In this document: positions 200 through 53,838 of the stretch, one piece after another
Layout of the letters: each line of letters starts with the position of its first letter
Position numbering within the stretch: position 1 is the stretch's first letter
Assembly: GCA_016748015.1 (NCBI GenBank)
Contig: JAAOMT010000003.1
Span: forward strand, 1,430,373-1,494,372
Length of the DNA: 64,000 nucleotides
Origin: Geosiphon pyriformis uo1
Lineage: Eukaryota; Fungi; Glomeromycota
Direction: 5' to 3'
Program-made: the position numbers and the translations under genes
The notes under the pieces: generated by a model
Databases searched by the model: none
Told to the model about the DNA's origin: nothing
Seen by the model: only the letters and a program-made list of their open reading frames with translations

Positions 200-1657
200 T
201 TAGTATACTAAGATAGGATCAAATGAGGGATATGAATCGAAGCAACTTCCCATAAGGACGTTAAGGTAGGGGCCGTTATTTGATTCATAACGTGATAAAG
301 AGTACTGGTTTATACATTCCTAAAAATAAAATCAATGGTTTTTCAATTCCTTGCTGATATCCAAAATACAAAAATCTCGAGACTTTTTGCAGATAGCTAA
401 CCTGACTCTCCTCTGTATACGACTCGCCTTCCGTAATAATAGTTGGACCTTCACATTGATAAACCTCAGACGTTGGACAATCACAAGAACTATCTATCCA
501 ATATTCGGTTTTTTGATGAAAGTACTCATCATACACGTTTCTCGATATGCGAGGAATATAGTCGTCCCTGTGAGTGAACCTATAGAATCTGATATTTTCT
601 CCAAGATTATTCAAAGTTTTTGCGAAATTTCGATCTCCAATATGGGGTTGTCCAAATGTGACTACACTTATAATGGAGGTTGACGCAGTTCGTTGATATA
701 ATTGGAGGAAATCAAGTATGAGAAATGTCGCATGAACTAATTCAAGAAATTGTTTAGCTTATATATTATTACTATATATAAAAAGAAATCAAGTGCATAG
801 AATTATTTCGATTTACCGCCTCCTATGCCATGACCGACAGCCGTGATTTTGTATATATGATTTTGTGTTATGGTCTCAAAGAGCCAATTGGCGATATCAT
901 TATTAGTTGCAAGATACTGTTGATAAAAGTTATCATCCACCTTTACACCAGGATATCGCTGTAATGGAGTCATGGTATTTCTTTTGCCAGACCAATAAGA
1001 GGGGTTATCTGCTTTATCACCCTTTACTCTGACAATTATTTCACCATTTTCCAATATTATATCAGCTAAGAAATTTGGAGAATTAAATTAGTTTTTGAGA
1101 TTGAAAATATTCAATAAACTTTATGCACTCCTTAAAAATTTACCAAATACTCCTCGAGCAAACTCTCTCATAAATTCAGGACAATATGCTCGCATAGCAT
1201 GCCATGCATATTTTTGATGACGCCTCAAAAATTCTTCATTTGTTATTTTTAATTTTATACCAGTGCTGCTTTTGACTTCTAAAGTTACATTTTCTTTTTT
1301 ACCATCGACTAACCCTAATTTTCCTGTCGAACTGTATTGAGGATTTAGAACAGCTGTAACAGCCGATTTATTCTCACATTCTAAGGAATCATAACCATTT
1401 CTATTAACACAATTTCCAGACTTCAAGTTTGGTTCATTCTTTTCCACCGAGAAATATCTTGGTTTTTCTTTAAGGCTGACCAGTCTAATTCCAATCCAGA
1501 CACATAAGGCAACAAGAGTGAAAATCAAAAGCATCAAATACCCACGAACTGATCTTTTCTTTGACCTGGGTTTTCGAAGTTGATTATTATGATCATAAAA
1601 AGTTGCTTCAACACGAGAATCAATCAAAGGTTCCTTTTCGTTAAGATTTTGCTTCAT
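200..1657 (-). CDS. Lipase class 3-fold protein, predicted catalytically inactive (copy 1), N-terminal signal-anchor; 4 exons
   Basis: Exons approx 1657-1144, 1065-817, ~737-401, ~319-200 with GT-AG introns. Motifs: TM (YLMLLIFTLVALCVWIGI), AYC, VGHGIGG, VVTFGQPHIGDRNFA, RFTHRDDYIP, EYWI, CDC, NNGPYL; stop TAA at 202-200. Confidence 0.88.
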
Positions 1658-3534
1658 TTTGAGTTTTAACGTGTAAAAGACGTAGGGCTTGATATATATA
1701 TAAAATGATTTTTATGCCTCAGATCGTATGTGTTTTTGTTTATTAGAACTCGAATAAAGACATTCTCATTAACAAAGAGACAAAAATTTTCCCAGTCCAA
1801 AGAGGTCTTAGATTGTGTCCAAGCACACCAAATACAGCAAAATTAAGAGTAAATGAAATTTCAGCCAAGTGGTAAGCCTTTTTTGTCAAGTATGTAAACG
1901 ATAAGCTCATACCCATGCAAAGAATGAGATTATCATTTTAAATAATCAAAAATCATACCTGTTATAGCCTCATTCCAAAAACCACAGAAAAGGAAATACA
2001 AACGCGAATTTCATAGATGTGACGTTAATTTGGTTTTTTTCATTTTGCCATCATCACATCGTTGATTTGATTGAAAACATGTATTTGGTAAAATCCAGAA
2101 TCTAAATTTCTTGCAATAAAGTTTATAAAAATTTTATCATTTCTATATTAGCACAAATTGGCAACAAAATAATTTTTGGAAATCTTATCAGTGATCTCTT
2201 TTGTTCAAATTCTTGTTGAGAGTTTACTACATATATTAAAGCCCTAAACACTCGAGAAAAGTATATATTGATATCAAAGGTTAGCATTCAGCCGGTATTT
2301 TTGACCTTGGGAAATCAAATTGCATCCAAAAATGAAAAAAACTGCACGGATTTAATATAGAACCTTTTCATGTTGAAGAAATATTTGATAAAATGGTGAA
2401 TAGTCAAATAAGCATTCGTTAATAAATAATGGTTTCACCATTTACGAGCAAAATTAGTTGAAATCATCTTCCGTCTTTAAAACATGTCCAAGAAAAAAAT
2501 AACTAGATCATAACGAAGCAAAATAAAATAAAATAGCACACTAAAATATTGAAATGCTTTTCATCTTCTAAAAAGAGTTTTTCATTATTCCAAAATTTAT
2601 TTCTCCTGCTACACTATCCTTCCAAATCTCGGTATTTCTTGTCGTTTCTAATGCAATTAAACCCGAAGAGAAAATCCTATGCCTTTTTTTCTGAAATTGT
2701 TTATAAATTGGTGACAATATTCTGCATATGGACTTGAATTTTTCAATTGGAATGGGAAAAGTGGTAATTAATTAGAATAAAATATACTCTGGCAGAACCG
2801 TATATCCGCATTATAATCTCACTACAATTTTACTTGCTAAACCCATTGAACAGAAGCACGCCTTTTGTTAAAAAACTTCCGAAAATTTAGCAGAGAAAAT
2901 TGCAAAAAAAAATTCTCGGAAAGCAGGACTTTGCAGCATATTAAACCAACGAAAATTCGTGTACTCCCAAAAAAAATGTAAGATTTGCGAAACAGGGTGA
3001 CTGCCTGAAAGAAAAAGATTTTTTTCCGCAGGCATTTACGATGAAGTGTCCTTTTTAAATATCAAATTATAGCCAGCATCATTAAAGAAGAAATCTTAAC
3101 AATGTGTAAAGATTTTAGTGTTCCCTTACACTAACTTTTGAGTCTGACAATTTGGTCTTTCAAAACAAAAAAGATACAGTTGCTTATTACATATTTGTGT
3201 AGTTTACGCTCTGCTATAAATAAAATTGGATGAAATTTAAATCAGGTGAACAAATATTATGCTTAAAGCATTTTCAAAGTTATTTATACGATGAATAATT
3301 GAAAAAAAGAGATGCTTAGCTTTTGGGTAACTTATTCTTAGGACTAAATAAATGTCTGCAAAGGAGATGGAGGTAGTTTAGTTTAAAGCATATCGGCATT
3401 TCTTATAAAAATATCGTATTTGCAATGTTCGAATAACATAGTGGGCTTAAAAGTTTAGGACAAGTAAATTCTTGAATCAAGATTATTGGAAATACTTATG
3501 AGTCTTGGAGTTTGGATTTTAATGTTTTTTCTGT

Positions 3535-6500
3535 TCAGCTCTCGCCAAGCCATTGAATTAGCTTGCTCTTAAGTTGTAGAAGTTTTAAAGGTTTCGTGAG
3601 ATAATCACTCATCCCGCTTTCCAAGCATTTATCACGTGTGCCCTTAGCAGCAGAAGCTGTCAATGCAATAATTGGGATCTCAGATTGAGGTGGCTTCATG
3701 CCACGAATAGCTCTGGATGCATCAAATCCTGACATAACCGGCTACAAAAAATATATATAATATTATTTTATGCAAAGTGGAGAAAATGGTTTACTATACC
3801 AATTAATTTCAAATTACCATAGCACAGTCCATTAGGATCAAGGATATTCTGGTTTTAGGTGTGGAGACATCTGAGTCAATGGAATCTCCAATTTCCCCTT
3901 GAACAATGTCAATTGCTTCTTGACCATTAGTGGCGGATAAGGATTGGTATCCCAGTTTGGTAAGCTGATGTAGAATTACCTAAACAAGAGACCAAAATAT
4001 GGTCAAACCTATGCTTAGCAAGATAAAGAAAATTCTGTTTTACTGACCTTCATATTAATTGGATTATCCTCCTGACAACGGAAATTTATTTTCAAAAGTT
4101 ACACTCAAGCTTGTAGTATCAAAAAAATCCATTAAATGTTAAGAGAAAATTAAATACCACGCATAATATACACTTCGATTGTGAGACTGCTCGAGTTCGG
4201 GATTTTTTTGATGATTCAGATTGTGATGAGCCATTAATGTCACTCGATGCGGATCTCTTACTCGGTAGCCTTGAGGAATTTGGTTTTTGTAACTTCGCTG
4301 TTAACTCCTCTTCCGGCGAAATATTAATTGCTGATACAGGCAATGCTTCCTGTATCATTTCAATATCAGGCTCAATGCTAACATCCGAGCTTCTAATTAT
4401 CGTAGACTCCTGATCAGTAGAAAGCGTTGGTCGATTGTGATAATCATAATCCTCAACTCGAAATCGATTAATTGATAAACCGACTGTTGGTTTAGGTTCA
4501 TCCATTTTGGCAGAATTAAATATTTCCTTATCACACAAACAATCCAATAATCGTTGCCGCATTACAGGCTTGCAAAGTGCTGCGGTATGTCCACCAATCT
4601 TTCGAATTAGTTCCTTGCCTAAGGCGCGACCTCCAGCAGACCAAAAGACTAATAAACCAATCGCCAATTTATCTTCACAAATAGATTGTAATTCTTTCGC
4701 AGCTTTCAATACTTGTTCGGTGTTTTTAGAGGATACATTAAAGAAAACCAAATCCCATGGTGGGCTGTGATACTGATCCCGCCAAGCTTTTGATGCCATC
4801 ACAGCTTTGGAACAATCCTCAAATGCCTCTACTTTATCAACGTTTGGATTAAGCATCGCTACCATAGCGGATCGAGATACTGCCACCGTGTCTATAACCA
4901 TGACCCTCCTCAATTTTATTTTGCTGGGTAAAACAAACATTGGCTCACCATTTGCCAGTTGATGAAGGGATTTTAGCGGCGTTGCCTTAAGGGTAAGGGG
5001 TTCAATATTCCAGGTAAACCAGAACCGACTACCTTTATTTAATTCACTCTGAACCCCTAAATCACCTCCATTAATGGAGACTAAATGTTTGCAGATAGAT
5101 AGACCTAAACCGGTACCATCTTGGCGTCTAGTCATTGAAGGGTCACCTTGTGAAAAGCTATCCCAAATATCTTTGATAAAGACTGGATCAATTCTACAAA
5201 AAATTACAGTTTTATAAGTTTTTGTTATAAAAAGCCGATATAAAACTTCAACACCTTACCCGATGCCTGTATCAGTCAATTCAATAAGTAAGCTTCCTGT
5301 TTTATGAGTATTCGGCTCACTATACAGCTCTGTTTCTGTGTTTTGGACATCGATTGAAGAAATTTTAAGTACGATCTCCCCAGAATCGGTGAACTTCAGC
5401 CTGAAAATTCTCGTTAGCTTTTAACAAAAAATTGCAATCTTTAATTGAAAATCCAAGATAACTTACGAGTTTGATAATAAATTCATTAGAATTTGTTGCA
5501 ATCTGCGAATTTAAAAACTCGAGTATTTAAAATGTCATTCTATATTCATTTCTATGAAATAAATTTAATGACATTTTTATTTACCTTTCAGGATCAGATT
5601 TCACATATTTTGGCAACTCAGTTGGATCAAAGATGAGAACCAATTCAATCTGTTTCGTGCCAGCTCGTTCGCCAAATATTTCTATTGTTTTCTCCACAAG
5701 GTCAAATAAATCAAAGGTTCGACAGGCCAGCGTAATTTTTTGCGCTTCAAGCTTTGCCGCGTCCAAAATGTCATTTACAACGGAAAGAACTACATCGGAA
5801 GCGCGAGTCATTATTTGAACCATATCTTTTTGATCAGTCGAGAGTGGTGTATCTTCTAGAGCAGATAAAACACCAATTATAGCTCCCAAAGGTGTACGTA
5901 ATTCTAAAAGAATATATTTAAATTAATTAAAAGTTTACTTAAATATAAGTTGCTATCATCTTGACATACCATGAGAAGTGTTGGCAAGAATTTGACTTTT
6001 GGCTTCATTTGCAGCTTTGGCTGCTTCCATTTGTGCTTCACGTTTGAGTTTTTCTTCGGAAAGTTTTGCATGAGTTATAGCCAAGCTGATTTGATTAGAA
6101 ATCTGCTGCAAAAACATTTTTTCAGAATCTGACCAATTTTCATTGGGTTTTCGATGAGCAATAATCCATCCCCAAAAAGAAGAGTTCAAATGAATAGCAA
6201 CTGATACTGAGGAAACCGACTCGTTAAGGATTGGTGAAAAATAATTTGCATGCGTTTCGATCTCAAGATCAAGAAAATCATTATCAGTATCAGCATTATA
6301 TAATCGTGGAACCAATTTGTTTTGTATTGGAACTGGTTGATCAGCTAAGGCTCGAGTAAAAGATCCCAAAAATGAAGAGCGATCATAGGAAAATGCATCG
6401 AGGTCTGGTAACCCATCCAAGTGATCGACCCATCTCTCTTGACTTTCATCAATACCCCTACCAATCACATGTGTCCCGACTAGAGGCTGCGTTTTTGAAC

Positions 6501-9500
6501 AAGAAGTTGGAGCGGCCATAATTTTTGCTGAACCTTTGTTCATTGGATCACTGAACAGGATGAATATTGAATCACAGGTGAGAATTCTGTTGATTTCATC
6601 AACAGCAGTTGATAAAATTTCCTCAATACTTAATCCGGAACGAATTTTACTGCTAATAGAAAATAGCAATTGTTTTGTTTGGATTTGGCGATGTTGTTGA
6701 ACTACAAGTTCATAACGTAGATTTGAAAGCTTTATATTAACTCGTACACGAGCAATAAGTTCACGGCCATTGAAAGGCTTGATCAAATAATCATCAGCAC
6801 CTCTCTCCAATCCTTGAAAAAATCGAAGCATTATTTATTAATAGCTATAATAGAATTCAAGGTAATCAAAAGGGTCTTTCGTGCAAACCTTCCACGCTCG
6901 CTTCTTCGCCTGCTCTTGCGGATAACAGGATGATGGGGATCCTTTGAGTTGACGGATCAGAGCGTAACAATTTAGTTAGCTCAAGGCCATTTATGTTGGG
7001 CATCATTATATCTATTGTTAAATTAAAAACCCATACATAAATAAAATCAAGAAAAAGCTTCACAATTATTTTACTTCTACAACGTACCACTTAACACAAG
7101 ATCCGGTTTTAATTCGCGATTATTTATAAGGGTTAACGCTTGATGACCATCGTAGGCACAAAAAACCTCGAACTCAAGTTTGAGAATATTCGCAAGATAA
7201 TTCCTGGGTAAAATATTAATAGTTAAATTAGCTAGGAAAAGTGTTTTTTTTAAAAAAAATGCTTGAAATATGGAAAACCAATTATAATAATCACCTCATA
7301 TCATTATTATCTTCTACCACAAGAACTGTGTAACGTCTGTTGGGATTAGTTGACTCTTCAGTAGATAAAACCGAAGTTGAAGTTTCTTTGTAAGCTTCTA
7401 ATGTTGGTGAGGCGATGGACAAAGACTTTAAATGTTCCATCGTTTTGTTCGCATCTTCTTCCTCCTCCTTCTTCTCTTCGAAGTTTGTGATAAAATTGTA
7501 GGAATCAGGCTTTCTTGTGATCCATTGATCACTTTCTTCCAAATATAAATCAACATTGTTGGCAATTCGCCCCCGAGATGAGGAAGCTAAACTTTTTTCA
7601 TCTTCCTTTAGATCATTACTTACAATCTTACTTGGCGACAAATGATCTTTTCCGGTTAATAAGTAAACTTGAAATGTAGACCCAACACCAGCTTCTGAAG
7701 TCACTGTTATGTCGCCTCCATGATGCTTTGCTAATTCTTTAACAAGAGCTAAGCCTATACCAGTGCCTTCATGGCTTCGTGATTGTTTCGATTCAATTCG
7801 ATAGAAACGTTGAAAAAGATTACCAAGGTGCTCTTTTTCAATCCCAACACCTTTTAATTAATACAATTGATTGGAATAATCAAGATGCGTTAAATTATTT
7901 ACAAAGGAATTAAAAATATGCTGTTTTTAAATTAAAACAACAACCTGTATCAGATACTTCCAAGACAACAACTTCACCGCATTCCTTCCTATCAGCATAA
8001 AGACGTACAGTGACTCCTCCATACCACGTGTATTTGAAAGCATTGGAACCTATGTTCAAATATAATTAGAAAAAAGTTTTTACACTTTGAATTCTTGTTC
8101 GCTCTAGAATCTAAAGTCAGAATCTTACATAAATTGAATACTATCTTTTCATAAAAATCCAAATCAAGATAGACTTTGCGTTCCAATTGACTTTCTAAAA
8201 CTTCACAATCTGGAATGTCGATCTTATAGGTAAGTCCAAATGATTTAGCCATGCTCTCAAAATTGGAAGCCAATTCTTTGGTAATCTTGGCAATGTTGCT
8301 TTCGTTATATCGGGCTTCCAAATGACCTGCTTCAATTCGTGAAAACTTGAAATATTTGTAAAAGTCAAATTGATTTGATTCATTTACTCAATCAGCGAAA
8401 GTAAACGTTGAATTCTTATGATAATCGCCAACCTGCAACAGAGTGTTTACTAATTTGAGCAAGCGTCGCGTATTGCGTTGAATCATTTCCAAGTTACCTA
8501 AAAAAGGAGATTCACGTCCACATGTGGCAATGGTATCTTCAAGTGGAGCTAACATAAGCGTGAGTGGGGCTAGAAATCGATGTTCAAAGTAAGCATTTTG
8601 ATAAATTATATTACAGGTGACAAAGAATTAGAATTGCAAGATTTTCAAATATATAGTTACTTCTCAATTCATGACTGATATTTTGAAAAAACATAATCTT
8701 CTGACGATTAAGATCAGCCAAAAGTTCTGCTTGCTTTCTCTCTTCTTCACGTGATCGTCCATTTGTTAAGCTAGAACTGACATGTCCAATTACTAACTGA
8801 AAAAAATATAGCATTGAGTTTGTAACAAATTTAGTTTCCTAGATCGAGCAAATTATTGAGAGCACAAACCTGACAGAATTCCAAATATGGGGCGTCAAGT
8901 GCTCGATGTTTATTAATCCCGCATATAAGGACAGCCGTTAGCATGGATTTCCCAGAAAAAGATGCTAATACGGGAAGAAGGATTGCTTGCGAGCCCTCAG
9001 CGAGTGAGACGGTTACATATTTATTATTTCTAATTACTTCCTTTAGAGGCCATGAAATGGGGTTCGATTGGTCTGTTGATTTTTGATTGCTATCCCGAGG
9101 TTTTGATCTATTTTCCAGAAAAGCCTCCATTTCTTTGGTGACATCAAGGTGACCACATGTTTTCGGTAGAAAATCAGGTAAATTTCTTGTAGATTTCCCT
9201 TCCACAAATTGTAATTCGTCAACACCATCGTCCGCAGATTGGACGAGTAAATTATCATCAAAAGTTGTAGCAGTTAATCGTGCTATATATCCTTTATCAT
9301 TTTCGTTAATGTGTGTATGTTCAATCAAGTATATAATAGCATACGTTATATCAGCATTGTGCTCACGAAGAGCAGTTGTGACCAAATGGCAAGAACTTTC
9401 GATAGATTTGGCACCTTTCAATAAAAGTATATTTTAATTTAATAAATGGTTGAAAATGATAATTTTTTCTCAAGTTTATAACATACCGGGAGTTCGATTC

Positions 9501-10502
9501 CCTAATTCACTCAAAGTTTTTAAACGACGAGCAGAGAGAACTCTTTGAGTTGTTTCCTGAACTGGAGTAAATAACCCGAGAATATCTCCATTTTCTCCGA
9601 ATATTGGGCTGAAAGTAAACGAAAAATAGCATTCTTCGGTATATCCGGCACGCGACATTAAAAGTAATAGATCATCATTAAATTGCCCTTTGCCAGTTAA
9701 CATTACTCTGTTAATAAATCTGAGTATTAAAATATGATCAAGTCTGTAAAATTCATTTAAAATAGGGTGGAAGTATTACTTATCAAAAATTGGCCCTATT
9801 ACGTCCCATATTTCGGGCCAAACTTCCTTTGCTGGTTTACCCAATGCTGAGAAAAAAATATGTCAGTGTTAGAAATAAGAAATTGGTTCAAAGGTTTGGA
9901 TGTGGACTCTCAATTTCCAAGTCTAAAATATTCGCCTAACCTTCTGGATGTTTCAATTTTAATATAGGCCGCCACACTGAAAGGTTCGATCGAGAAATAG
10001 TCAAAAATTGTGAGATTTAGAAAGTTTCCGTTGAAAATTTTATTTTCCAGCATATTAAAAAAAAAACTTTACTTTGATTATAAATCAATACTTTGTCGGA
10101 TCCGCAGTACAACACCATTGGAAACACCGAGTGAAGACATAGGTCCTAGAATATTGGTAGGAAGAAAAAGAAATGGAAAAACTTTTAATGAAGCACACAT
10201 TCACAATGAAAGGCAATATTAGAATAATTGGATATAGGCTAGACATTGAAAAAGATGTCAATTTGTTTGGCGCAATTCAAACTCCTTCATGAAAAATCCC
10301 TGGGGTTTATCGTCAATACTTTGAAGCTAATAAAATATTAAAATAAGCGTACCACAACTGTTTTTAAGGAAGTTGGCCATGTGTTCATAGCACCAAGCTC
10401 CGTGGATGACCAGTCAAAAGCATAAACAAGCTCGGAAAGTGGTAGTTCATCTTGATATTGGTCCAAAGGTTCCTGGTCTAATTGGGTTTTGTCAGCCGAC
10501 AT
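3535..10502 (-). CDS. Dual hybrid histidine kinase (PAS-like, GAF-like, HisKA-HATPase, REC, GAF, HisKA-HATPase, degenerate REC, REC); many short exons
   Basis: Start MSADKTQ...FDWSSTELGAMNTWPTSLKT at 10502. H-box 1 FFQNISHELR|TPL; G-boxes DTGVGI and HEGTGIGL; REC1 VLVVEDNNDMR...DIMMP...ILLSA...GADDYLIKPF. H-box 2 ILANTSH|ELRTPL; DGTGLGLSICKHLV; REC2 CV|EDNPINMK (24-nt exon 4071-4048)...LMDCAM|PVMSG...IIALTA...DYLTKP. Confidence 0.93.
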
Positions 10503-11681: not shown

Positions 11682-13675
11682 CTAAGAAACCACTTCCCGA
11701 TGCATAACTTCAAGTGTACGCCCTTTGGTCTAAGATAAATAATCAAATATTAAAATCCTTTCGTAAGACGCATTTCAAAAATCAGAAATTAAATACAAAC
11801 CTCAGGAAGAAAAATATATGTTGCTAAAGCACCAATAGCTGAAATCACGGCAAATGCAAGGAATGTATAGTTTCCAAGGGTCGAATTAAGCACGGGAAAA
11901 GTGGCAGTAGATGAAAAATTCAAAATCCAATTTAAAGAAGATATCACCGAAGCAGCAGCACTTATTCCATGGGTCGGGATCAATTCTGGAATAAGTAGGA
12001 AGGGAATTGGACCCAAACCAATTGCAAAGGATGCGACGAATAATAAAACTATGAAAAAAAATCTAATTCTTATTTTCATCGTAATAAAATGGTTTATAAC
12101 ACAATCTCAACACAATCTCTCTAGACCAAAAATCGATCACTTGCCTGAAATAACTACGAGAACATCGTACGCATAAAAAGACCCAAATATAACGAGAACT
12201 GAAGAGATAAAGACTCCTATTTGTGAAAGAAGCAATAAAGGTCTTCTTCCATTTTTGTCAACAATCATGACAGCAAAAGTCGTAAAAACCAGATTGACAA
12301 GACCGACAGCTATTGTTGCATAGCTTGCCGAATTTCCAAAAACTGTGGAAAATATTTCAGTGCTCAAGATACAAAAGACTCGAATGGTAAATTTTTAGTT
12401 CTAAACATCGGCTATCGTAGAAATTTATAATTACCTGTAATAAATAATGCCATTAATGCCACATATTTGTTGCATGGTATGCACCCCAAAACAAATAAAT
12501 ATCATTTTTCGACAATTTTCATCTTGAAAAAGTTCATGGAGTGATAATGATCTTCCGGAATATATAATTGATTCGTTAGTGCTCAATCCATCGCTTGATA
12601 ATAATTCGGGATTTTGACTTTCAAAATTATTTCGTGCTTCAACAATTTCTTTAAATTCTGTCTGAATATCATATCCTTTTCGTAATTGCTGCAATGAATT
12701 ATTAGCCTCCTCCAATCGGTTCTTTAAAATTAAGTAGCGAGGTGTTTCTACACAAAATTTTAGTAAAATGATTTGGATTAAAGCTGGCAGCGCATTTAAA
12801 GCCAACAGGAATCGCCAGCCAGGAACAAATGACAACCAAAGGCCAAAAATCTGGGAAACTAGCACGCCAATCACTATAAAGAGATGATGACTTGTCCCTA
12901 AGGCCCCTCTTCCTTTCGTCGTTGCTATTTCACCTAAATATGTCTTTGAAATAAAATTTGAATCAAATTTAAAGGCCAAATTCAAAATTCTTCAAGAGTC
13001 CATTTACCGGGACAGTAACAGTGGAAATGCCGCTACCAATTCCAGTAAATATCCGTCCGATAATAAACATGGCTGGATTTATCGCAGAGGCCAGCACAAT
13101 TCCCCCCAGAATATAATTCAAATTGTTCACCCTAAGGGTAGGAACTCGACCAAACCTATTTTGTAAGTTTCCCCCCATAAGACTTCCCAACAAGCCACCA
13201 AAAGCATAACTTCCAACTGCAAATCCCCTAAATTTATCAGCAGTAAAAAATGTGACAATTTTCACGATGAGCAGGATGAAAAGAAAAGCTTAAAATTTTA
13301 CCAAAGTAAATTTTCCATTGGCAAACAATCTGGTAATGTGCTAGTCAAAAAATTTTGGCCACCATGTTCGCAATTACGAATCGTTTTCTCTTGACAAAAT
13401 TTTATTGAATTGGATTATTTATTTTCAACAAGTAAATTCAAAAGCTATTGCTTCTATAAATTTAAAGATTTCAGGGTTTTACCTGGTACGTTTGTTACCC
13501 CAATATTCCAACCATTCTCAAAGGCCGTCAAAACACTCACGAATGCCACAAACAGGCAATAGGATGGCAGATAAGCTGTCTTAGAATTGGGGGTTTCAAT
13601 GCTCGTCTCTGGGAATTCATTTTCAACAAAAATTTTTGGTGAACTTGGTTTCATTTCTGAACTTTGAGTTTGCAT
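11682..13675 (-). CDS. MFS sugar porter (GLUT/SLC2-like hexose transporter)
   Basis: Motifs FENGWNIGVTNVP, NRFGR, GRIFTGIG, EIATTKGRGALG, ETPRYL, QQICGINGIIYYSTEIF, VDKNGRRPLLL, GLGPIPFLLIPEL, LNW, LPE|TKGRTLE. Multiple introns; stop TAG at 11684-11682. Confidence 0.93.
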
Positions 13676-15249: not shown

Positions 15250-15282
15250 TGCATTAATTAATTAATTAATTAATTAATTAAT
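15250..15282. repeat. (TTAA)n self-complementary microsatellite
   Basis: attaattaattaattaattaattaattaatt run inside an AT-rich block. Confidence 0.8.
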
Positions 15283-16698: not shown

Positions 16699-18181
16699 CT
16701 ATTTTTTTATAATTTGAAAAACTTCATACTCCTCGACAAAAAAATCTTGCTTTTCTGATCCACGGATTATGGCATGCTCATAATCTGTTGTCTTTTGACA
16801 AAAGCACCCTGGACTATTTGCAAAATCATTGCCACCCAATCCAATACTACCATCTCCAAAATAGGGTCCATAATCTAGACCACAATAAGGTCCAGAATCG
16901 CCAAAATACCTGCTAAGTTTAATATTTTTATCTTCAAGGGAAAAAATAAAACTTCCTTCTCCATCCAACCAACCACCTCTAGAGTGCCAAGATTGTGGGT
17001 TAAAGCCGCCAATTAACTGACTAGTTCCTTTCACTTTGATTACGCTTACTGTTGCTCCTTTATTATCGCATAATCGATGAAAATCGGCTGGAGCGAATCC
17101 GTCTCGACTGCCTCGAAGTAATAAATTAAAATGATTTCCAAGTCGATCTTCAAAAGGGGTGTTTTTGTTTTTGCCTTGAATCCAACGATCAAGGCGTTTT
17201 ACATTCTGCAATTGAAGAAGCCTTGAATCAGTATTTGATCGTAATGGCTGATCGTCTTGAGACTTTTGTTGACTACCCGGTACGAGATAATGATGTAAAA
17301 GATCTTCATATAAAGTTCCAGGTAAAATTCTCGCAAATGGTTTTACTTTGTGATAAAAGTTAATTGAAGATATGTTAAAGAAGCGGATTAAAGGTAGAAG
17401 TCTTTCAATGGATTCCTTAAAGGCGTTAAAGTTTTCATCTGTCCAGTTAAGAACTTCTTTCATCTGAATGTTTGGATCTAATTTAGCAACTCCCCATTCC
17501 ACAATCTTTTCCCATATTTTAGATTCTTCCATATTTAGGTCATTCCGAGTTAAAATTGAGGAAAGAATATTCTCACTAAGAGAGGTGAAATCTCGAGAGT
17601 TGAAGACTATAGCTGGATTGTTAGCAGCTATTTGGGTGCAAAATTTTTGTAGCTTTTTGAAAGAATCATGCATAAATGAAGTTTTGTGCAAAGTGGCGAA
17701 ACTTTTTTCTAGCTCTTTTGGATGGTGTTCAATCAAATAGTCTTCAACGGTATCAATAAGATTCTCTATAATAAGCTCATCAGCTGTAACAAGCAATTGT
17801 AAAATGGTAGGCACATCATGTTTATCAAGAGAGATCTCGCCGTTATAAATATATCTGTATAGGAAAATGAACCATATAAATCTATGTTAGCCAAAAATAC
17901 TTTGAAGCAAATAAAAACCCTTACGTGAGAATTATTTCAAAAATATTAGGTAAAATATTAGGTTTAGCGAAGATAATAGTATTGTTTTCCCTTTTAACCC
18001 AATTACTAGAGAGTGCTACAGCAAAATATGGTGATCTTGCTGCTAAAATTTGGGAATGAGCGTGAAAAGTTCTAATATTAGGCGCTTCTCCAACAATAAT
18101 ACTAATATCAGAGAATTTCTGACTCTTTAGTAAATTCCCGAAATCATGGGATAAAGCGTGGAGGAATTGCTGGGCTGCCAT
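16699..18181 (-). CDS. BTB/POZ-BACK-TLDc domain protein; 2 exons
   Basis: BTB FSDISIIVGE...FHAHSQILAARSPYF; intron 17924-17855 then YIYNGEISL. BACK LTRNDLNMEESKIWEKIVEWG; TLDc LLLRGSRDGFAPADFHRLCDNKGATVSVIKV...IGGFNP...GPYFG...VEEYEVF. Typical expanded glomeromycete architecture. Confidence 0.92.
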
Positions 18182-18594
18182 TGATAAACTATGAGAAGTT
18201 TTTGAAGTGTTGATAGTTCAACCTGCAGTCTCCAGTTTCACAAAACCAAATCAGCACCGAGTTTTTTTATGCTAACAAGTGATCGACAGGTGATGGATAT
18301 TAATTTTTTCAGATTTAAATACAAATTACTATCTTAACCATTAAATTATTGTTATAAAACAAATGCACAAACAAGAATTGAAAATAATTTATATTAACCA
18401 TTAGATTTTACATAATTTGTTATGTGAAAATTTTAAATTAATATTGGGAAATTCCAAATATAGTTGGTTTGTTGACAATTAATTTGGATCTATAATTAAA
18501 AAGCTTAATTTCTTTAACATTTTATTTCAGTCAAATATTATATGATATATTAAAAAAAATATACCAACTTAAAAATAAGATTTAAACAAACAAC

Positions 18595-18636
<42 letters not shown>

Positions 18637-33299: not shown

Positions 33300-33301
<2 letters not shown>

Positions 33302-41719: not shown

Positions 41720-42882
41720 TATTTGCCTCTGCTGCTTTTAAATAGAATTCAAGTTCTCCATCCATTTCGATAATATGTTCTAATATTGGTTTGTGGACTC
41801 GGATTTCTATTTCGATAATATGTATCAAGTTTTATTTATCCAAATAAACTTCCCGCCTCTGCTACTTTTGCATATAGTTCAAATGCTTTCCTCATTTTTC
41901 GTCGTTCCACATCCATTTTGATAGCACAATCCAAGTTTGTATTGTGCTTTTGTAAGACCCGCCTCTGCTGCTTTTGAATAGAGTTCAAATGCTTTTTCCT
42001 CATTTTTCATCGTTCCCCATCCATTTTCATAACACAATCCAAGATTGAATTGTGCATCTAAACTTCCAGCTTCTGTTGCTTTTGAGTAGAGTTCAAATGC
42101 TTTTTCCTCATTTTTCGTCGTTCCCCATCCATTTTTATAGCACAATCCAAGGTTATTTTGTGCTTTTGTAAAACCCGCCTCTGCTGCTTTTGAATAAAGT
42201 TCAAAGGCTTTTTCCAAATTTTTCATCGTCCCAATCCATTTAAATAACACATTCCAAGATTGTATTGTGCATCTAAACTTCCAGCTTCTATTGCTTTAGA
42301 GTAGAGTTCAAATGCTTTTTCCTCATTTTTCATCGTTCCCCATCCATTTTCATAACACAATCCAAGGTTATTTTGTGCATTTGTAATACCCGCCTCTGCT
42401 GCTTTTGAATAAAGTTCAAAGGCTTTTTCCAAGTTTTTCGTCGTTACTTCTCCATTTTGATAATAAAGTCCAAGATTGTATTGTGCATTTGTATTTCCAG
42501 CCTCTGCTGCTTTTGAATAAATTTCAAATGCTTTTTCCTCATTTTTCGTCGTTCCTTCTCCATTTTGATAACAAACTCCAAGATTGAATTGAGCTTTTAT
42601 ATTACCCGCCTCTGCTGCTTTTGAACAATATTCAAAAGCTTTTACTTCGTTTTTCGTCGTTCCCCATCCATTATCATAACAAAATGCAAGACTGAATTGT
42701 GCATCTGAATCTCCTGCCATTGCTGCTTTTAAATAACGTTTAAATGCTTTTTCCTTCTTTTTTTGATCACGCTTAAGATTTTGTTTTGGAAAAATTGTTA
42801 AACTTTTTTTGATAAAGTTAAAGGTTCCTATAAGACAATTAGGAGATGAAATTGCGTTTTCAAGTGATAAAGTAGAAGACAT
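41720..42882 (-). pseudogene. Sel1-like repeat (SLR) gene with 108-bp tandem units, frameshifted
   Basis: About 8-9 36-aa repeats [33 protein letters not shown]. One-base losses near 42230 (GGA ACG to GG ACG) and near 41888, then decay. Confidence 0.8.
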
Positions 42883-43976: not shown

Positions 43977-45486
43977 TTAATTCGTAACGCACTGTTTCAT
44001 TGTGACTCCAAAATAAGGGCCATAATGAGCTAAATTTTGTCCATCTTCTGAATCTTTTGTGGACAAATTACAATCCTAAATTTTTCAAAATTTTTTTAAT
44101 GTTTTTTATTAGTCAAAAGAAAAATTTTGTATTAAAATTCTTATCTTACAGGATTTTCACCAAATCTATTGACAGCCTTAATATGATAACCTTTGCAACT
44201 TAAGGTTATAAATCCATCCGGCATCGGTGCTGTTTTTCGAGCATTATTATTTCCAATACAATTACAATCGGCGGTTGTTATCCAAAATTCTTCCTCATGA
44301 TGCATATAAGGTGGAGGAAGAAATAACCTGGGTACCCAATCATTGGTGTGAGTTACTCGGGTTACTTCGAGGTATACGTTTACTAGGGTCGCGTACATTT
44401 CTAACCCGACTCGAGGTTGTCCAAATGTTATTACTCGAAGCCTGGCTGGGTGATTTTTACGTTTTGAGGATTGGAAATGATAAGATAAGCCGGCTAAGGA
44501 GGCGTAGGCTAGTAAAAAAAATGAATTTGAATGCTCAAGATGTCTGTCTAAGAGTGAAAAAATCAAAATTTATAGTTAAAATAGTACCGACCACCACCAA
44601 TTCCATGTCCAATGAATATAACAGGAGCAATTTTAAAAATTTCCGGATATTTTTTAATAGCTTTGTCAATACCGTCAGTGATTTGTGGTAACTCAAGTTC
44701 AACCGGATTATAAAATTGGGTATCCACGAATGCTTCTATTGACGTTGGTGTATCATTAGTGTATTGAATTAGGTCCATTGTGCTCGTTTCTGAATGTCTC
44801 ATCCATTGTTCCCGTATATATTCAGGTCCTTTAAAGTTGACAATAATTCTTTGTTTTTTAGAATATACTAAAACTGTTGCTGGTATATTTGAAAAATATT
44901 TGGAGAGCTAGAGTTGATTAAAATAAAATTTTATTTCAAACATTTCAATTACATGCAAACCTATTTGTCCTTCATGAGTGATTTCTACATTAGGTGAAAT
45001 GCCACAATATGCGTAATTTGTAATTTCGGCTAATTCTTTGTAAAAAAGATATGGAATATTCGTCCTTCTCGGTTTGTTTGCTTGTTTTTCTCGTTTTGCA
45101 TGCATAAATTTATAAATATTGCTTTTAAGTTTTTCATTTTCTATTGCAAGAGCTTCAGAGAGGATAACGGTGGCTTTTTGCCGTGGAAGATCAAGTTTTA
45201 ATGAGGATACAGGAAAAATAACTTGGGGTTTTGAAGGTTTAAATGAAATGTTGAATGATTTGTCCCCAATTGAAAGTATTTTAACTCTTGTTTCAGTCTC
45301 TAAATCTTGCCAGATTTTTCCATCTTGACCACTGAAAAATTTAATGATCAAACCAAAACTGATTAGAAAGCTTATTACTAAAGCAAATCCGGTCCAAAAA
45401 TGAAATCGAGTGAATTTTTGCAATTTTGATTGATTGAGGAAAATCAATTTCGAGTTTAAAATTGGAAACTGGTAAGTTTGAACCAT
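43977..45486 (-). CDS. Lipase class 3-fold protein, predicted inactive (copy 2)
   Basis: TM FWTGFALVISFLISFGLII; YAYC; FKGP; FIGHGIGG| intron; VITFGQPRVG; RVTHTNDWVPR; HHEEEFWI; DCNC; last exon DCNL...AHYGPYFGVTMKQCVTN*. Confidence 0.88.
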
Positions 45487-47744: not shown

Positions 47745-49207
47745 ATGATTCTCAATCATTTTTGGGAAAAAAAGAAAGGGTTCTTTGCAAGACAAATTAT
47801 ATTTCTTTTCATCCTTATTCTAGCTACTCTCGAAATTCTTGTCAATGAAGTCGAAAAATATTACTTAACTAGAGCAAAATTATCTGAAAATAGGTTAACC
47901 TGGTTAAATAATCAAGACTTTTTTTATTTGTGGCCAGCAACACTCCAAAATAATAAGACCTTAAGTAAACGTGAATTAATAGCAGCTGGCCCTTCAAGAG
48001 GTTTCGGTGGCAGCTCTAGAAAGAAATCCCCTCCTAAAACACTAGTTACTGATCCGGAGATTATAAATTTATTAAAAACGATGGCGTTGTGGGCAAATAT
48101 GCCGTATTGCACTCCTAACCAGAAACTTGTAAAAGATTCCTTGGGATTAATTTGTAATGAAAATCTCTCTTTTAATTTGTAATTATTTGGAAAAAAAACA
48201 CCATTTTCAAAGCCTAAATTTTCATATTCACGATCTTATTTGCAATGAAAGTTGATATGTCAATACAAACGATAAGGGGAAAGGAAGGATTAATAATTTA
48301 TTTTCGTGGTGGGTTTTCTAAAACTTCCTTTGAATTTAATTTAAATTTAAACTTCAATATTTTTCTTTAAGGACCTGAACTTACTAGAAAGCAATGGGAT
48401 GCCAGGAAATTTTATTTGGAATTGGATAATAGAAAAAATCGAAATCCTTGGCCAATAGATTCTGAATGGCCTAAGGTGCTTACAAAAGGAGTAATCAGTA
48501 ACATTTCAAGGCAAATTGCAGCTTTTAGCTCGAGCCTTACTGGCGATACAGTGTTCATTTATTTTACGGGCCATGGAATAGGAGGGGGTAATGCTATATT
48601 TAAAATTTGTATATAAATATGATAAAGTAAATTAATTTTTATATTTTTTTTTGGATAATAGTATATGCCCTATATTTCGCTATAATATCTCTGATCATGG
48701 TAAAAAATTTAACTCAAAGACTAATCATCGATGGTAGGAAGATGGAAGTCGCAGTTATTACATTTGGACAACCAAGAGGGGGAAATTTTGATTTTGCAGA
48801 ACGCGCAAATGATTACGTGAGATTGAAACTTCTCAGAATTTACCGTGTGACCCACTCAAATGATCATGTGCCACAGCGACCATATTTAGAGTCGACTTCA
48901 AAACCTTGGTTCCATACCGACCGAGAATATTGGATTTCATTGAATTGTGATTGTTCGCAAAAAAAAGAGCCTGAATATGAACTTTTTGAATGTCCAGGAT
49001 ATTCTAATACTGATTCTAAAAAATACGGAGAAAATAAGGTAATTCCCTCAAGGTATTTTTTTTCGAGAGTTTAACTTTATATTTATTTTCTGATAACTTT
49101 AATAGGAATGCAATCTTGGTACTGATGGGGCAAGTAACACAGCTAATTATGGTCCATACTTTGGAACCACTTTTGGAAAATGCAATAAGTTTTTTGAATT
49201 GAATTGA
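47745..49207 (+). CDS. Lipase class 3-fold protein, predicted inactive (copy 3)
   Basis: TM QIIFLFILILATLEILV; LSKR; MPYC; short exon ...IIYFRG|PEL; FTGHGIGG (48569-48586) then intron; VITFGQPRGG; RVTHSNDHVP; HTDREYWI; CDC; last exon ECNLG...ANYGPYFG...C...TGA 49205-49207. Confidence 0.86.
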
Positions 49208-50029
49208 ATTGAATTGATTTGGTCTTATAATCAAGTATTATATAACCAAAGCAGAATTTTTAATAAATAAAGATAATGTTGGAGAGTCTTTTTAAATCTA
49301 ATTGATTTTGATTCTTAAAAGAGAAAAAAAATTTATATTGAACAAAGTTCAATATTTAAAAATAGAATAATATAGTTAATTGCAAAATTTTTTTTTAATT
49401 ATTAATGAAAAAAATAGGATTTACAATTTATAGAACTTTTAAGATAAACCTTTATTGGCATAAAATATTGTAGCATTCAGTTTATATAGAAAAAGTCTTG
49501 TCAAATTCAGATAGATTTATCCTTTGATATATTTGATATTATTCTCTTGATAATGAAAAAAATAAATTTTCAAAACTTGATTAATTTGTACCTAAATTTC
49601 GTTTATTTGAGTGTGAAATTTAGGTCATTTTTTAATTTGAAAATTTAAATATATAATAAAAAGTTGCAACCATTTAAACTTTTTATCTGGATTTGTGATT
49701 TCATTGTCCATTTTAATTTAAAATAGCTGAAGTTTCTTATTCCTAATATTATTATTTTAAAGCAAAAAAATACTCTTTGCTATTTTTATTGAAGTTTTAA
49801 TTATTTATACAGAATTAGGTTAAAATAAAAATTTCAAAATAAGTGGTACCTGTTCAAAGTAAAATATATCACCTAAAAATTAAATTTCACAATAAGTAAC
49901 AGCCCAAATACAATTGATATTAAATATGCTTTTAAAAGGTTTATTTCTAAGATGTTTTATTTAATCACGATATAATTATAAAAAAGCCTTTGAATTAAAA
50001 CCCTCTAAATACATTTTAGGTAATTATTA

Positions 50030-51508
50030 TCAAAGATCACCACCAAAGCATTCACGCATTTTTATGTTGAAGTAAGGTCCATAATGTGGGGACATCAGTC
50101 GGTTATTTGAAATAGGCTGACCAGCATTGCATTCCTTCATTAAAAAATAATACATTTATAGGCAATTGAATTTAAATTGTGGAATTACCTTAACATAAAC
50201 CAGCAAATTAAATAGATATCAAATACAAACCAAGTTTTCCCCCGTTCCAGCAACAATATTTCGCTTGACTCCATGGCAAATAAAAAGAGCTTTATCATAC
50301 TCAATCAATGACTTTGGATTCTTAATTGAACCATCACAATGACAATCAGGTTCTGAAATCCAATATTCCAATTCATGGTGCTCAAATTCTCCTCTGGGGT
50401 TTCCATTTTGTGGGACAAAGTCATCAGTATGTGTAACACGAAACACATTCAAATGTTTATTTATATATTCTGCAAAGTTAGGCGTTCCAATCCGCGGTTG
50501 TCCAAACGTTATAGCTTGAACACCATATTTCACTTTTGGAAACATACTTGGTCGTCTCTGAGTGGAATGTAGGAATTCTAGAGCTGCTAATATAGCAAAT
50601 GCTTGAAATGACAAAAATATTTTACAATTTCGAGTTATTTTGGAGTCTATTAATGTTTGTTCATTAAAAAATTTGAATTTCTTATTACATACCACCGCCA
50701 ATCCCATGACCGGTAAAATAAACAATTGGATGTGGCCTTTCTTTTAAGTAAGGGTTCTCCGTGGTTAAAAGATATTTAATCTTTTCTAGAAGTAGTGGAG
50801 TCATAGTCAGGACGTTTTTATACCATTCGGCATCAACGGCTCCTACGAAAGTTTTCTCTGATATTGTTTTATATTTTATGAATTCAGCTCTCCTATTTTT
50901 CCAGTTATTCAAAGTTAAGGTCGGCCCTTTGAAATAGGCAATGACCACTCTATCAACCGAATCTATGAAAACATCAGCTATTTATAAAGAAAGGTAAAAT
51001 AATGTTGGATAACAATGAATTTAAGCTTTCTAGACGATGTAAAAAAAATAATATGATATGTAACTAAACCTTTAATATCGGTCCTTCCTTTGATAGCCTT
51101 TCCAACTTCATTATTATCCAAACAATAGCCCAAATTTGCATACATTGCCATTTCACCCAAAAATGAGATCATTTTAAGGTCTGTAACTATCTTTTTTTGT
51201 GGATAAGGCGATGAAGGACTACTAGGTTGTCCTTTAAATTTTGGAGAACCATCATTTTGGCGTTTACTAAATCTAAAATCATATTTATCATGAGAAAATT
51301 TAAGCGACGATATATTTTTTCCTTTTCGAGTAATCACTAATGTAGTAAAATTGTGATTTGGATGATAAACACTTAAAGTTGTCGACTTTAGCAATTCAGA
51401 GATACTAATTCTAAAGAGTTTTAGATGCCATGATCTGTAAAAAATCAACACAGAAATGAGTCCAAAAGCATAAAAGGTGAGTTTTGAAGATTTAAATCTT
51501 TTTTGCAT
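50030..51508 (-). CDS. Lipase class 3-fold protein, predicted inactive (copy 4; left arm of inverted duplication)
   Basis: MQKRFK...FYAFGLISVLIFY; FSKRQ; LGYC; YFKGP; FTGHGIGG|; ITFGQPRIG; RVTHTDDFVP; HHELEYWI; CHC; ECNAG...PHYGPYF...ECFGGDL*. Confidence 0.88.
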
Positions 51509-52361
51509 TGCTAAAATTTCAATGTTAATGATCTTCGAAAACGCCTCATTTAAATCATACAAAAATCGTTATCTAGTTTTTATTTTTCAGTGAGCAATTT
51601 CCGAATTGGGCTCTTTATTTAGGTGGGATAATCACCATGTGATTGAGAAGGGTAAAAGTTGAGTTAGAGGTTAAAATTAAGATAATGGGAAAGTTTCTAT
51701 TAAATAATAAAAATATCAAATTTTCTACGCAAAAACGATTTGTCTATACAATAAATAGGAAGCAGTCAATGTTTTGCTAATCGTATTTTTTCGTCATAAA
51801 CTGAGGGATAAAATGAAAAAATGATCGAGATTAGTTCAGGTTTAACCGAATTTTGTTGACCATACTCTAGTTATCCGAATTTGAAAGGCTTGTAGAAATA
51901 AACAAAGAGTACTAGAATTCGAATTTTTTTTAAACTTTAAAATTATTTATCATCTTATATCAAAAAGAAGTAAAATAAATTTCAGAATGGTTTTTTGACC
52001 AAAAATCCAGCTTTAAAATCAGACAGCTCACTATAAATATGTCCAAGTTAAAATACAATGTCGCTTAAAAAATCGATTTGCACGAAAAATTTGAATCTTT
52101 TACATGTGCATGTATAAAAAATGTGCACTAGCTTTTCTTTTAACCATTTATTTGTGTGATGATTGTTTCACCCAAATAAAGAGTTAATTTGGAAATTCGT
52201 CAATGTAAAATTTAGCAAAATGAAAACTAGGTAGTGATCTTTGTATAATATTTTTACCAATAATTTATTCATCACACTTAAAGATAATATAAAGTAGGCG
52301 TTTTCAAGATGATCAAACTCTCGCTCATCGTCAGAAATATTAACATTTTAGCATTCAACCA

Positions 52362-53838
52362 ATGGAAAAAAGATTTAAACCTTCAAAGCTCACCTTCTTT
52401 TGTGCGTTTGGACTCATTTCTGTGTTGATTTTTTACAGATCATGGCATCTAAAACTCTTTAGAATTAGTATCTCTGAATTGCTAAAGTCGACAACTTTAA
52501 GTGTTTATCATCCAAATCACAATTTTACTACATTAGTGATTACTCGAAAAGGAAAAAATATATCGTCTCTTAAATTTTCTCATGATAAATATGATTTTAG
52601 ATTTATAAAACGCCAAAATCATGATTCTCCAAAATTTAAAGGACAACCTAGTAGTTTTTCATCGCCTTATCCACAAAAAAAGATAGTTACAGACCTTAAA
52701 ATAATCTCATTTTTGCGTGATATGGCAAGGTACGCAAATTTGGGCTATTGTTTGGATAATAATGAAGTTGGAAAGGCTATCAAAGGAAGGACCGATATTA
52801 AAGGTTTAGTTACATATCATATTATTTTTTTTACATCGTCTAGAAAGCTTAAATTCATTGTTATCCAACATTATTTTACCTTTCTTTATAAATAGCTGAT
52901 GTTTTCATAGATTCGGTTGATAGAGTGGTCATTGCCTATTTCAAAGGGCCGATCTTAACTTTGGGTCAATGGAAAACTAGGGGAATCAATTTGACACAAT
53001 ATAAAACAAATTTTGGAGAAGCAGTGGATATCAGATGGTATAAAAACGTCCTGACTATGACTCCACTACTTCTAGAAAAGATTAAATATCTTTTAACCAC
53101 GGAGAACCCTTACTTAAAAGAAAGGCCACATCCAATTGTTTATTTTACCGGTCATGGGATTGGCGGTGGTATGTAATAGGAAATTCAAATTTTTTTATGA
53201 ACAAACATTAATAGACTCCAAAATAACTCAAAATTGTAAAATATTTTTTGTTATTTTCAAATAAAGCATTTGCTATATTAGCAGCTCTAGAATTCAAATA
53301 CGCTCTTCAAAACAACGAATACAAATTTCCTGAGCTTGATTACGATATTAAAGTTGTAACGTTTGGACAACCGCGGATTGGAACGCCTAACTTTGCAGAA
53401 TATATAAATAAACATTTGAATGTGTTTCGTGTTACACATACTGATGACTTTGTCCCACAAAATGGAAACCCCAGAGGAGAATTTGAGCACCATGAATTGG
53501 AATATTGGATTTCAGAACCTGATTGTCATTGTGATGGTTCAATTAAAAATCCAAAGTCATTGATTGAGTATGATAAAGCTCTTTTTATTTGCCATGGAGT
53601 CAAGCGAAATATTGTTGCTAGAACGGGGGAAAACTTGGTTTGTATTTGATATCTATTTAATTTGCTGGTTTATGTTAAGGTAATTCCACAATTTAAATTC
53701 AATTGCCTATAAATGTATTATTTTTTAATGAAGGAATGCAATGCTGGTCAGCCTATTTCAAATAACCGACTGATGTCCCCACATTATGGACCTTATTTCA
53801 ACATAAAAATGCGTGAATGCTTTGGTGGTGATCTTTGA
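52362..53838 (+). CDS. Lipase class 3-fold protein, predicted inactive (copy 5; right arm of inverted duplication)
   Basis: Same four-exon structure as copy 4; FTGHGIGG at ~53144-53167; VTFGQPRIG; THTDDFVP; PHYGPYF; stop TGA 53836-53838. Confidence 0.88.

Follow-up and report, generated by a model that had tools for sequence, protein, structure and literature searches.

Non-catalytic members of the alpha/beta-hydrolase fold are already known. In neuroligins and related cholinesterase-like adhesion proteins the nucleophile is replaced (by Gly in neuroligins), and these proteins act as membrane-anchored binding ectodomains; the lipase-like yolk proteins of Drosophila, from which the active Ser is absent, carry lipids or steroids. 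Both groups are found in animals, belong to other alpha/beta-hydrolase families (carboxylesterase type B and pancreatic lipase, respectively) and have far fewer copies than the family described here. The latter occurs in Geosiphon pyriformis, a member of Glomeromycotina that lives with Nostoc and serves as the sister model for how arbuscular mycorrhiza (AM) arose; to our knowledge, it is the only fungus that houses a cyanobacterium intracellularly. We analysed a window of 64,000 nucleotides from its genome (assembly GCA_016748015.1, contig JAAOMT010000003.1, positions 1,430,373 to 1,494,372 of the forward strand), which contains five genes, named here c1 to c5, whose products resemble class-3 lipases but carry Gly in place of the nucleophile Ser.

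The closest described relatives are the lipases of Rhizomucor miehei, Rhizopus and Thermomyces lanuginosus (1TGL, 1TIC, 1TIB). They have in common with the Geosiphon family the fold, the TFGQPR.G motif, the Asp of D.VP, the HH..EYWI segment, the H..YFG loop, the cysteine pattern and the lid Trp. In the window copies, however, Ser is changed to Gly, the oxyanion Ser/Thr to Pro or Asp and, in c1 and c3, the catalytic His to Asn; the family also counts about 300 copies. Whereas Rhizomucor-type lipases are made with a cleaved pre-pro-peptide, the Geosiphon family has a predicted membrane anchor and a disordered stalk.

Canonical lipases exist in the same genome (L005 and L007-L009, with L004 also listed as canonical), as well as in Glomus cerebriforme (P0144). 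They have the phase-1 intron after G-H-x-x-G-G, at an identical position, and the H.GPYFG and D.[VI]P motifs of the dead family. They differ by keeping FRGT and GHSLGG, with an AGY codon for Ser, are presumably active, and number tens, not hundreds.

Two precedents exist for a class-3 lipase scaffold used without hydrolysis. The S146A mutant of Thermomyces lipase is catalytically inactive. Its structure holds, according to the entry title (1GT6), oleic acid in the cleft, and among structures it is the best model for a lipase that binds but does not cut; it is nonetheless an engineered single mutant with an intact oxyanion hole and His, and not a natural family. The second precedent is the plant EDS1/PAD4/SAG101 family, in which a class-3 lipase-like domain is used without hydrolysis and which appears among our weak structural matches (Foldseek ranks 45-50). 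These proteins have a C-terminal EP domain, are cytosolic or nuclear, form heterodimers and often keep the Ser, whereas the Geosiphon family is predicted to be extracytoplasmic. An EP domain was not detected in the Geosiphon proteins, which end about 15 residues past the His loop and have Lipase_3 as the only Pfam family on record.

Five lipase-like genes without the catalytic serine

A six-frame scan of the window with GGN-CAY-GGN-ATH-GGN-GG, the back-translated GHGIGG pattern, finds exactly five sites; none is found in 100 dinucleotide-preserving shuffles. In every copy the segment that follows the motif, read from stop to stop, matches positions 75-137 of the Pfam family Lipase_3 (PF01764) with 37-46 bits, the cut-off being 22. 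A PF01764 match is likewise on record for P0001, the public protein encoded by c5, and for its relatives. When P0001 is compared with PDB sequences by phmmer, its Gly235 falls on Ser146, the nucleophile, and its Asp299 on Asp201 of Thermomyces lipase: 'vyftGHGiGGafail' is aligned with 'vvftGHSlGGalatv', and 'thtdDfvp' with 'thtnDivp'.

The AlphaFold2 model of c5, built on a 78-row family alignment, has a mean predicted local distance difference test score (pLDDT) of 80.6. It consists of a long N-terminal helix (residues 9-42), a segment with pLDDT below 50 (43-97) and a confident domain (100-396). Its best Foldseek matches are the Rhizopus, Thermomyces, Rhizomucor and Yarrowia lipases and feruloyl esterase A, with E ~1e-13. 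All of the top 30 are fungal class-3 lipases or feruloyl esterase A, with template modelling scores by target of 0.6-0.74. The window genes are homologues of Rhizomucor/Thermomyces-type class-3 lipases that lack the nucleophile.

The damage extends beyond the elbow. The oxyanion position reads KGD in c1, KGP in c2, c4 and c5, and RGP in c3, with Ser or Thr in none of the five; as Pro has no backbone NH, the oxyanion NH is removed in c2-c5. The catalytic Asp is kept throughout. The column of the catalytic His was set by transitivity, from the His of P0144 in the family profile to His257 of Rhizomucor lipase (HMMER); this residue is kept in c2, c4 and c5 and replaced by Asn in c1 and c3. Each copy has at least two catalytic defects: the nucleophile is gone, and in addition there is Pro at the oxyanion position (c2-c5) and/or the His is gone (c1, c3), c3 having both extra defects.

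The genes themselves are intact (Table 1). In all five models every frame is open and every intron is GT..AG, and all share a phase-1 intron whose preceding exon ends one base past the second GG codon, so that a G stands before the GT of the splice site; c3 has an additional intron between FRG and P. TFGQP, the Asp of D.[VI]P and the Cys pattern are present in all copies. Three genes correspond to public proteins; the joined models of the other two, c1 and c3, were used only for local alignment and for estimating selection, the profile search being done exon by exon.

An initial annotation, made from the letters alone, had already described the five motifs with their Gly codons GGC, GGA, GGA, GGG and GGG, the KGD, KGP and RGP variants, the intact frames and splice sites with the common phase-1 intron, and the surviving TFGQP, Asp and Cys positions, and we read them identically. 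Among the catalytic remnants it was right about the Asp; the replacement of His by Asn in c1 and c3 had escaped it.

A family of about 300 members

The five genes, first taken for the entire family, are a sample of approximately 300 genome-wide. We searched the whole assembly (128 Mb, 792 contigs, 28% guanine-cytosine (GC) content) for GHG and GHS sites. GH-G-x-GG occurs at 329 sites, with 30 in the reversed control; GH-S-x-GG with an AGY codon at 41 (control 5); and GH-S-x-G[GA] with a TCN codon at 32 (control 7). This corresponds to ~300 GHG-type versus ~60 GHS sites, and all four Gly codons are used among the GH-G-x-GG sites listed. A six-frame search of the genome with the Lipase_3 profile returned at least 171 matches, most of which begin at profile position 75-77, just past the shared intron. 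The window genes lie within a looser cluster of at least 10 family members on the same contig, at ~1.40-1.53 Mb, with Lipase_3 matches at contig positions 1404319, 1411896, 1499798 and 1528581 and a second copy in L024.

Using a local domain profile, we aligned 202 domains from 166 proteins. The elbow residue is Gly in 140 of the 186 domains aligned at this position, followed by Ser (24), Ala (11), and Asp, Arg and Phe (3 each): the Gly proposed to be fixed is so in the window, but not family-wide. At the oxyanion position Pro is the most frequent residue (46), before Lys (26), Asn (13), Arg (12) and Glu (10), with 8 each for Ser and Thr. The catalytic Asp is kept in 189 of 193 domains (98%) and the His in 135 of 156 (87%), with Asn in 11, despite an overall identity of only 30-40%. 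Those Ser-bearing members that are nested among Gly members are likewise without the canonical RG[ST], reading for example RGP, WAP or LGP.

In the nucleophile-less members, at least 80% conservation is seen for the elbow glycines, TFGQPR.G, R.T...D..P, H...E.WI, six Cys and GPY; the Asp, Arg, Glu, six Cys and motifs reach 90-100%. The lid Trp, placed 7-9 residues past the oxyanion Gly, is 35-60% conserved across the family and present in all window copies. The same profile has no new Ser and no unpaired Cys at 80% conservation or more, which argues against the relocated nucleophile that had been named as a possible objection.

The canonical lipases of the same genome, with FRGT and an AGY-encoded Ser in GHSLGG, serve as the internal control and would be the likely source of the family: a single A-to-G transition would turn AGY into GGY, the oxyanion Ser/Thr being lost as well. 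A single origin of the Gly was considered and not retained. In the FastTree tree, which is star-like, the branches are long, and at least 23 state changes are needed, 8 of them forced by well-supported branches; gains and reversions were not told apart from it.

Outside the assembly, a phmmer search with c5 exon 3 against 1.84 billion cluster representatives gave 360 proteins at E <=1e-3. Among the best 150 of these, GH[G]xGG is found in most, and GHA, GHD, GFG or GWG in fewer. All of the ~45 nucleophile-less proteins for which a name was found come from Geosiphon pyriformis, and none from an AM fungus. Ser-bearing matches come from Geosiphon, Glomus cerebriforme, Panaeolus, Coemansia and Paraphysoderma; the Glomus protein P0144, our sampled AM relative, is canonical (GHSLGG/RGT). 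Homologue searches with P0001 and with the 78-row profile gave 22 and 26 matches, a yield limited by the word filter, all of them from Geosiphon. A search for contigs on record that encode P0001 gave none, and the ESM Atlas returned generic Lipase_3 clusters only.

We also scanned 241 million metagenome records for the family motifs with a 14-row alignment. Among 80 loci, 70 have GHS and 3 have GHG. These three (L061:930-947, L066:157-174 and L037:661-678) read GHGIGG or GHGSGG and lie on contigs of 43-60% GC, versus 28% in Geosiphon; they appear to have lost the nucleophile sporadically and independently, outside the Geosiphon family. Within the public proteins and this one metagenome scan, a coverage without other Archaeosporales, the expansion is specific to the Geosiphon lineage. 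A full-text literature search, in which the Geosiphon genome paper (Malar et al. 2021) was not covered, found no description of the family. As far as we could find, a lineage-specific family of some 300 dead class-3 lipases, putatively membrane-anchored, is undescribed.

Selection, topology and genomic setting

Ratios of non-synonymous to synonymous substitution rates (dN/dS, or omega) were obtained by the Nei-Gojobori method. Compared with P0152, a paralogue with 69% identity, c5 has an omega of 0.31 (confidence interval (CI) 0.23-0.43) at dS 0.60, and c4 an omega of 0.39 (CI 0.28-0.54) at dS 0.65. Among c1, c2, c3 and c5, dS is saturated, exceeding 1.7. The family is old and under purifying selection, though the constraint is only moderate. 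The age claimed for it initially is borne out; the selection is seen in the comparisons with P0152 and not in the pair c4/c5, where omega is 0.76 at dS 0.087 with a CI of 0.48-1.39, which spans 1.

The genes c4 and c5 are head-to-head inverted copies. They are 97-100% identical over exons and introns and become random within ~40 bases outside the coding region: the duplicate comprises the gene body only, without transposon ends. Two patches depart from this identity. The first takes in the oxyanion position, the lid helix and the next hairpin (50-85% identity), the second the loop past the elbow helix (47-72%). Within the 55 codons of the two patches, 28 differences are non-synonymous and 6 synonymous, as compared with 16 and 7 in the other 340 codons. 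Our reading is that gene conversion is probably homogenising the two gene bodies while two surface segments stay different, or else that these segments diverge very fast.

A recent import of the patches by gene conversion from another assembled copy is not supported. The rest of the assembly yielded no donor for the c4 patches, and for c5 there is only the expected paralogue, its second patch sharing 82% identity with the P0152 gene. Seven other close pairs, each independent, vary across the N-terminal half and in the loop past the elbow helix; the two-patch pattern is only partly general.

At the N-terminus, c1 has a basic tail of 40 residues followed by a hydrophobic segment of 22. In c3, c4 and c5 a short basic start precedes a hydrophobic segment of 16-17 residues, with no obvious cleavage site. 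Together with the low-confidence region 43-97 of the c5 model, the hydrophobic segment suggests a type II anchor and a flexible stalk carrying a lipase-like ectodomain. The cysteine pattern is the disulfide pattern of the Rhizomucor lipase family, which fits an oxidising, extracytoplasmic location. Both features agree with the surface or secreted location proposed at the outset. In the public model of c2, P0034, the first intron excises the hydrophobic segment FWTGFALVISFLISFGLII, which is encoded in a continuous open reading frame (ORF; Table 1); if this frame is left unspliced, c2 would have an N-terminal anchor like its paralogues.

Transcripts were sought in the contigs of a public sequencing run of 2019, X1, which give no expression levels. 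Contigs without mismatches skip intron 1 of c5 (52803->52896) and its intron 3 (53637->53734) at GT..AG joints. Another zero-mismatch contig lies on c4 exon 3 and begins precisely at the exon boundary, and contigs with one mismatch lie on c3 exon 1. In one contig c5 exon 2 is followed directly by c4 exon 3, with the joint at the exon boundaries; it resembles a chimera that arose in assembly from the spliced transcripts of two paralogues. Altogether, c5 is transcribed, and there is some support for c4.

The other genes of the window are of diverse kinds. Two adjoining genes resemble hybrid histidine kinases. The ORF with a strong match to Sugar_tr, the sugar transporters of the major facilitator superfamily (E 7e-34), probably represents a single exon of a gene for a monosaccharide transporter. 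A further ORF encodes BACK and TLDc domains, as is typical of the BTB-type expansions of Glomeromycotina, and another has a full-length DUF829 match (E 9e-33). Two segments have a very low GC content (0.20 and 0.18) and no long ORFs.

On its downstream side c2 is directly followed by a Sel1-repeat gene. The annotated protein P0071, encoded in another part of the genome, has Sel1 repeats (residues 79-366) as well as a lipase-like domain carrying GFSVGG, either as a real fusion or as a merged model. A sixth lipase copy near 42 kb was ruled out: the matches there are Sel1 repeats, with a counterpart in an annotated fusion protein. Several annotated Geosiphon proteins, among them P0013, P0081 and P0128, have 2-5 tandem lipase-like domains in up to 1286 residues; either these proteins are genuinely multi-domain or neighbouring tandem genes were merged in the models.

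Table 1 Lipase-like genes of the window, their diagnostic positions and neighbouring features. Positions are counted from the first letter of the window.
Feature	Position	Strand	Details
c1, gene	200-1657	-	Exons 1144-1657, 817-1065, 402-736, 200-319; model built from sequence; motifs VKGD, GHGIGG, DDYIP; Asn in place of catalytic His
c1, GHGIGG elbow	818-835	-	Middle Gly codon GGC
c1, catalytic-His position	278-280	-	Asn codon AAT; final small exon reads NNGPYL
c2, gene (P0034)	43977-45486	-	Annotated exons 45470-45486, 44953-45358, 44592-44907, 44150-44508, 43977-44075; exact spliced mapping; motifs FKGP, GHGIGG, NDWVP, HYGPYF
c2, continuous ORF with hydrophobic segment	44911-45507	-	Segment excised by first intron of P0034
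c2, GHGIGG elbow	44593-44610	-	Middle Gly codon GGA
c2, catalytic His	44025-44027	-	First codon of HYGPYF
c3, gene	47745-49207	+	Exons 47745-48153, 48252-48308, 48372-48587, 48662-49038, 49106-49207; model built from sequence; motifs GHGIGG, NDHVP; Asn in place of catalytic His
c3, GHGIGG elbow	48569-48586	+	Middle Gly codon GGA
c3, catalytic-His position	49145-49147	+	Asn codon AAT; final small exon reads NYGPYF
c4, gene (P0151, G9A89_023400)	50030-51508	-	399 residues; exons 51070-51508, 50693-50977, 50231-50601, 50030-50134; exact spliced mapping
c4, GHGIGG elbow	50694-50711	-	Middle Gly codon GGG
c4, catalytic His	50084-50086	-	First codon of HYGPYF
c5, gene (P0001, G9A89_023401)	52362-53838	+	396 residues; exons 52362-52803, 52896-53168, 53267-53637, 53734-53838; exact spliced mapping
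c5, GHGIGG elbow	53150-53167	+	Middle Gly codon GGG
c5, catalytic His	53782-53784	+	First codon of HYGPYF
Divergent patch 1, in c5	52940-53046	+	
Divergent patch 1, in c4	~50815-50933	-	
Divergent patch 2, in c5	53247-53366	+	
Divergent patch 2, in c4	~50500-50625	-	
Hybrid histidine-kinase-like genes	4122-9775	-	Gene at ~4.1-6.8 kb: GAF, HisKA, HATPase_c; gene at ~6.9-9.8 kb: weak PAS match, HATPase_c, Response_reg
Sugar_tr ORF	12431-12985	-	
BACK and TLDc ORF	16699-17814	-	
Low-GC segment	20001-24000		GC 0.20
Sel1-repeat gene	41890-42882	-	
DUF829 ORF	55375-56256	-	
Low-GC segment	56001-60000		GC 0.18

Possible functions of a dead lipase scaffold

With modest confidence, we lean towards the view that these proteins are non-catalytic modules of lipase fold, membrane-anchored or secreted, which putatively bind a lipid or a partner rather than cut it. 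With the Ser gone, the oxyanion Ser/Thr also lost and often replaced by Pro, and the His repeatedly changed to Asn, ordinary ester hydrolysis is very unlikely. The retained lid Trp, cleft scaffold, disulfides and Asp-His (or Asp-Asn) pair fit a module still able to dock on lipid and to keep hold of an acyl ligand. The ectodomains, secreted or held by a type II anchor, would no longer hydrolyse esters, and the lipase cleft and lid would still bind a hydrophobic ligand (fatty acid, acyl ester or glycolipid) or the surface of a partner.

Gly is the residue most suited to the strained elbow turn of the alpha/beta-hydrolase fold, which would explain why it was kept through synonymous turnover; it may have been the best fit for this conformation once the Ser was dispensable. 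The Asp and the His (or Asn) may be kept as hydrogen-bonding groups for the head group of the ligand. That the family is so large and so divergent suggests a multitude of different ligands or partners, possibly at the interface between the fungus and Nostoc.

Several observations weigh against such a binding role or weaken its premises. The near-invariant Asp and the His kept at 87% fit residual or altered chemistry equally well, and ~300 paralogues exceed the need of a simple carrier. The youngest pair, c4/c5, is indistinguishable from neutrality, the CI of its omega including 1. A clear hydrophobic segment is found in only about half of the annotated members with an N-terminal extension, among gene models that are imperfect. 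The only run with spliced contigs, X1, is labelled 'RNA? (probably DNA)'; its introns are removed exactly, so that the material must have been spliced. Finally, species specificity is judged on public proteins and one metagenome scan, with other Archaeosporales outside this coverage.

A more specific form of the binding hypothesis, which we put forward tentatively and regard as rather unlikely in all its parts, is that Geosiphon possesses a large, diversifying repertoire of membrane-anchored recognition or sequestration modules. A variable lid and surface loops on a conserved core, built on the dead lipase scaffold, would serve there to sense, capture or hold lipids, or glycolipids of the cell surface, of Nostoc or other microbes at the symbiosome or hyphal surface.

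It is also doubtful, to a similar degree, that the proteins are still enzymes. Some enzymes of the alpha/beta-hydrolase fold use a His/Asp pair alone as base, and here the Asp-His pair could be the general base for water, or for some other nucleophile, within the space that the change of Ser to Gly has opened; the reaction, hydrolysis or acyl transfer, would then be a different or non-covalent one. The persistence of this pair across so divergent a family speaks for it, as do the lid Trp and the cleft scaffold. On the other hand, the oxyanion Pro of c2-c5 and of 46 aligned domains costs a backbone NH, and the Asn found in 11 domains, including c1 and c3, forms hydrogen bonds but cannot play the role of a base. 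An elbow that tolerates Gly, Ala, Asp, Arg and Phe also sits badly with a reaction at this site, and S146A versions of Thermomyces lipase, present in public structures (1GT6), are inactive.

Largely functionless bloat, in which tandem or segmental duplications within a repeat-rich genome multiplied a Ser-less lipase, with many of the copies now on their way to becoming pseudogenes, appears unlikely. The omega of the youngest pair, the loose clusters and inverted duplicates, the variable elbow residue, and several annotated products that are short or look fused would all agree with it. It is opposed by the five intact frames with all their splice sites and by the conservation, at 90-100%, of the Asp, Arg, Glu, six Cys and motifs between old copies with saturated dS. 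The gene-body-only duplication of c4/c5, without transposon ends, points the same way. The initial annotation had pictured decaying pseudogenes as showing dN/dS near 1 and no expression; the older pairs have omega 0.3-0.4 instead, and spliced transcripts of c5 are found.

Many pseudoenzymes regulate their own active relatives, and dead and active paralogues of common ancestry coexist in this genome. The dead copies could bind, hold, inhibit or target the ~25-40 active class-3 lipases of the same genome, or compete for their substrate or interface, but we find this quite unlikely: the dead outnumber the live by about 5:1, and those of the window adjoin each other, not an active gene.

Very improbable, finally, is the original proposal of lipid carriers, receptors or effectors of an AM fungus at the plant interface, linked to lipid feeding by the plant: a lipase scaffold without catalysis, a surface or secretory topology and the lack of a match to the fungal type I fatty-acid-synthase helical domain in the genome, in a search made without a positive control, would suit it, but the genome is that of Geosiphon pyriformis, which hosts Nostoc in its bladder, not a plant root, and forms no arbuscular mycorrhiza, and the only dead members with a name are its own, the Glomus counterpart being canonical. 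Type I fatty acid synthase is reportedly lacking in Geosiphon.

With a total of ~15,000 Geosiphon genes, as implied by PMC10234402, the dead-lipase family makes up perhaps 1-2% of the gene content. Its absence from the sampled relatives makes it an obvious candidate for lineage-specific biology, such as defence, the recognition of partners or, in what is probably a fatty-acid auxotroph, the capture of lipids. The family would rank among the largest natural pseudoenzyme expansions on the alpha/beta-hydrolase fold and, as a natural experiment, tells what a lipase retains after catalysis is abandoned: the elbow Gly, the Asp-His pair, the lid Trp and the disulfides. If the recognition or sequestration repertoire proves true, it would constitute a receptor-like family of a kind undescribed in fungi.

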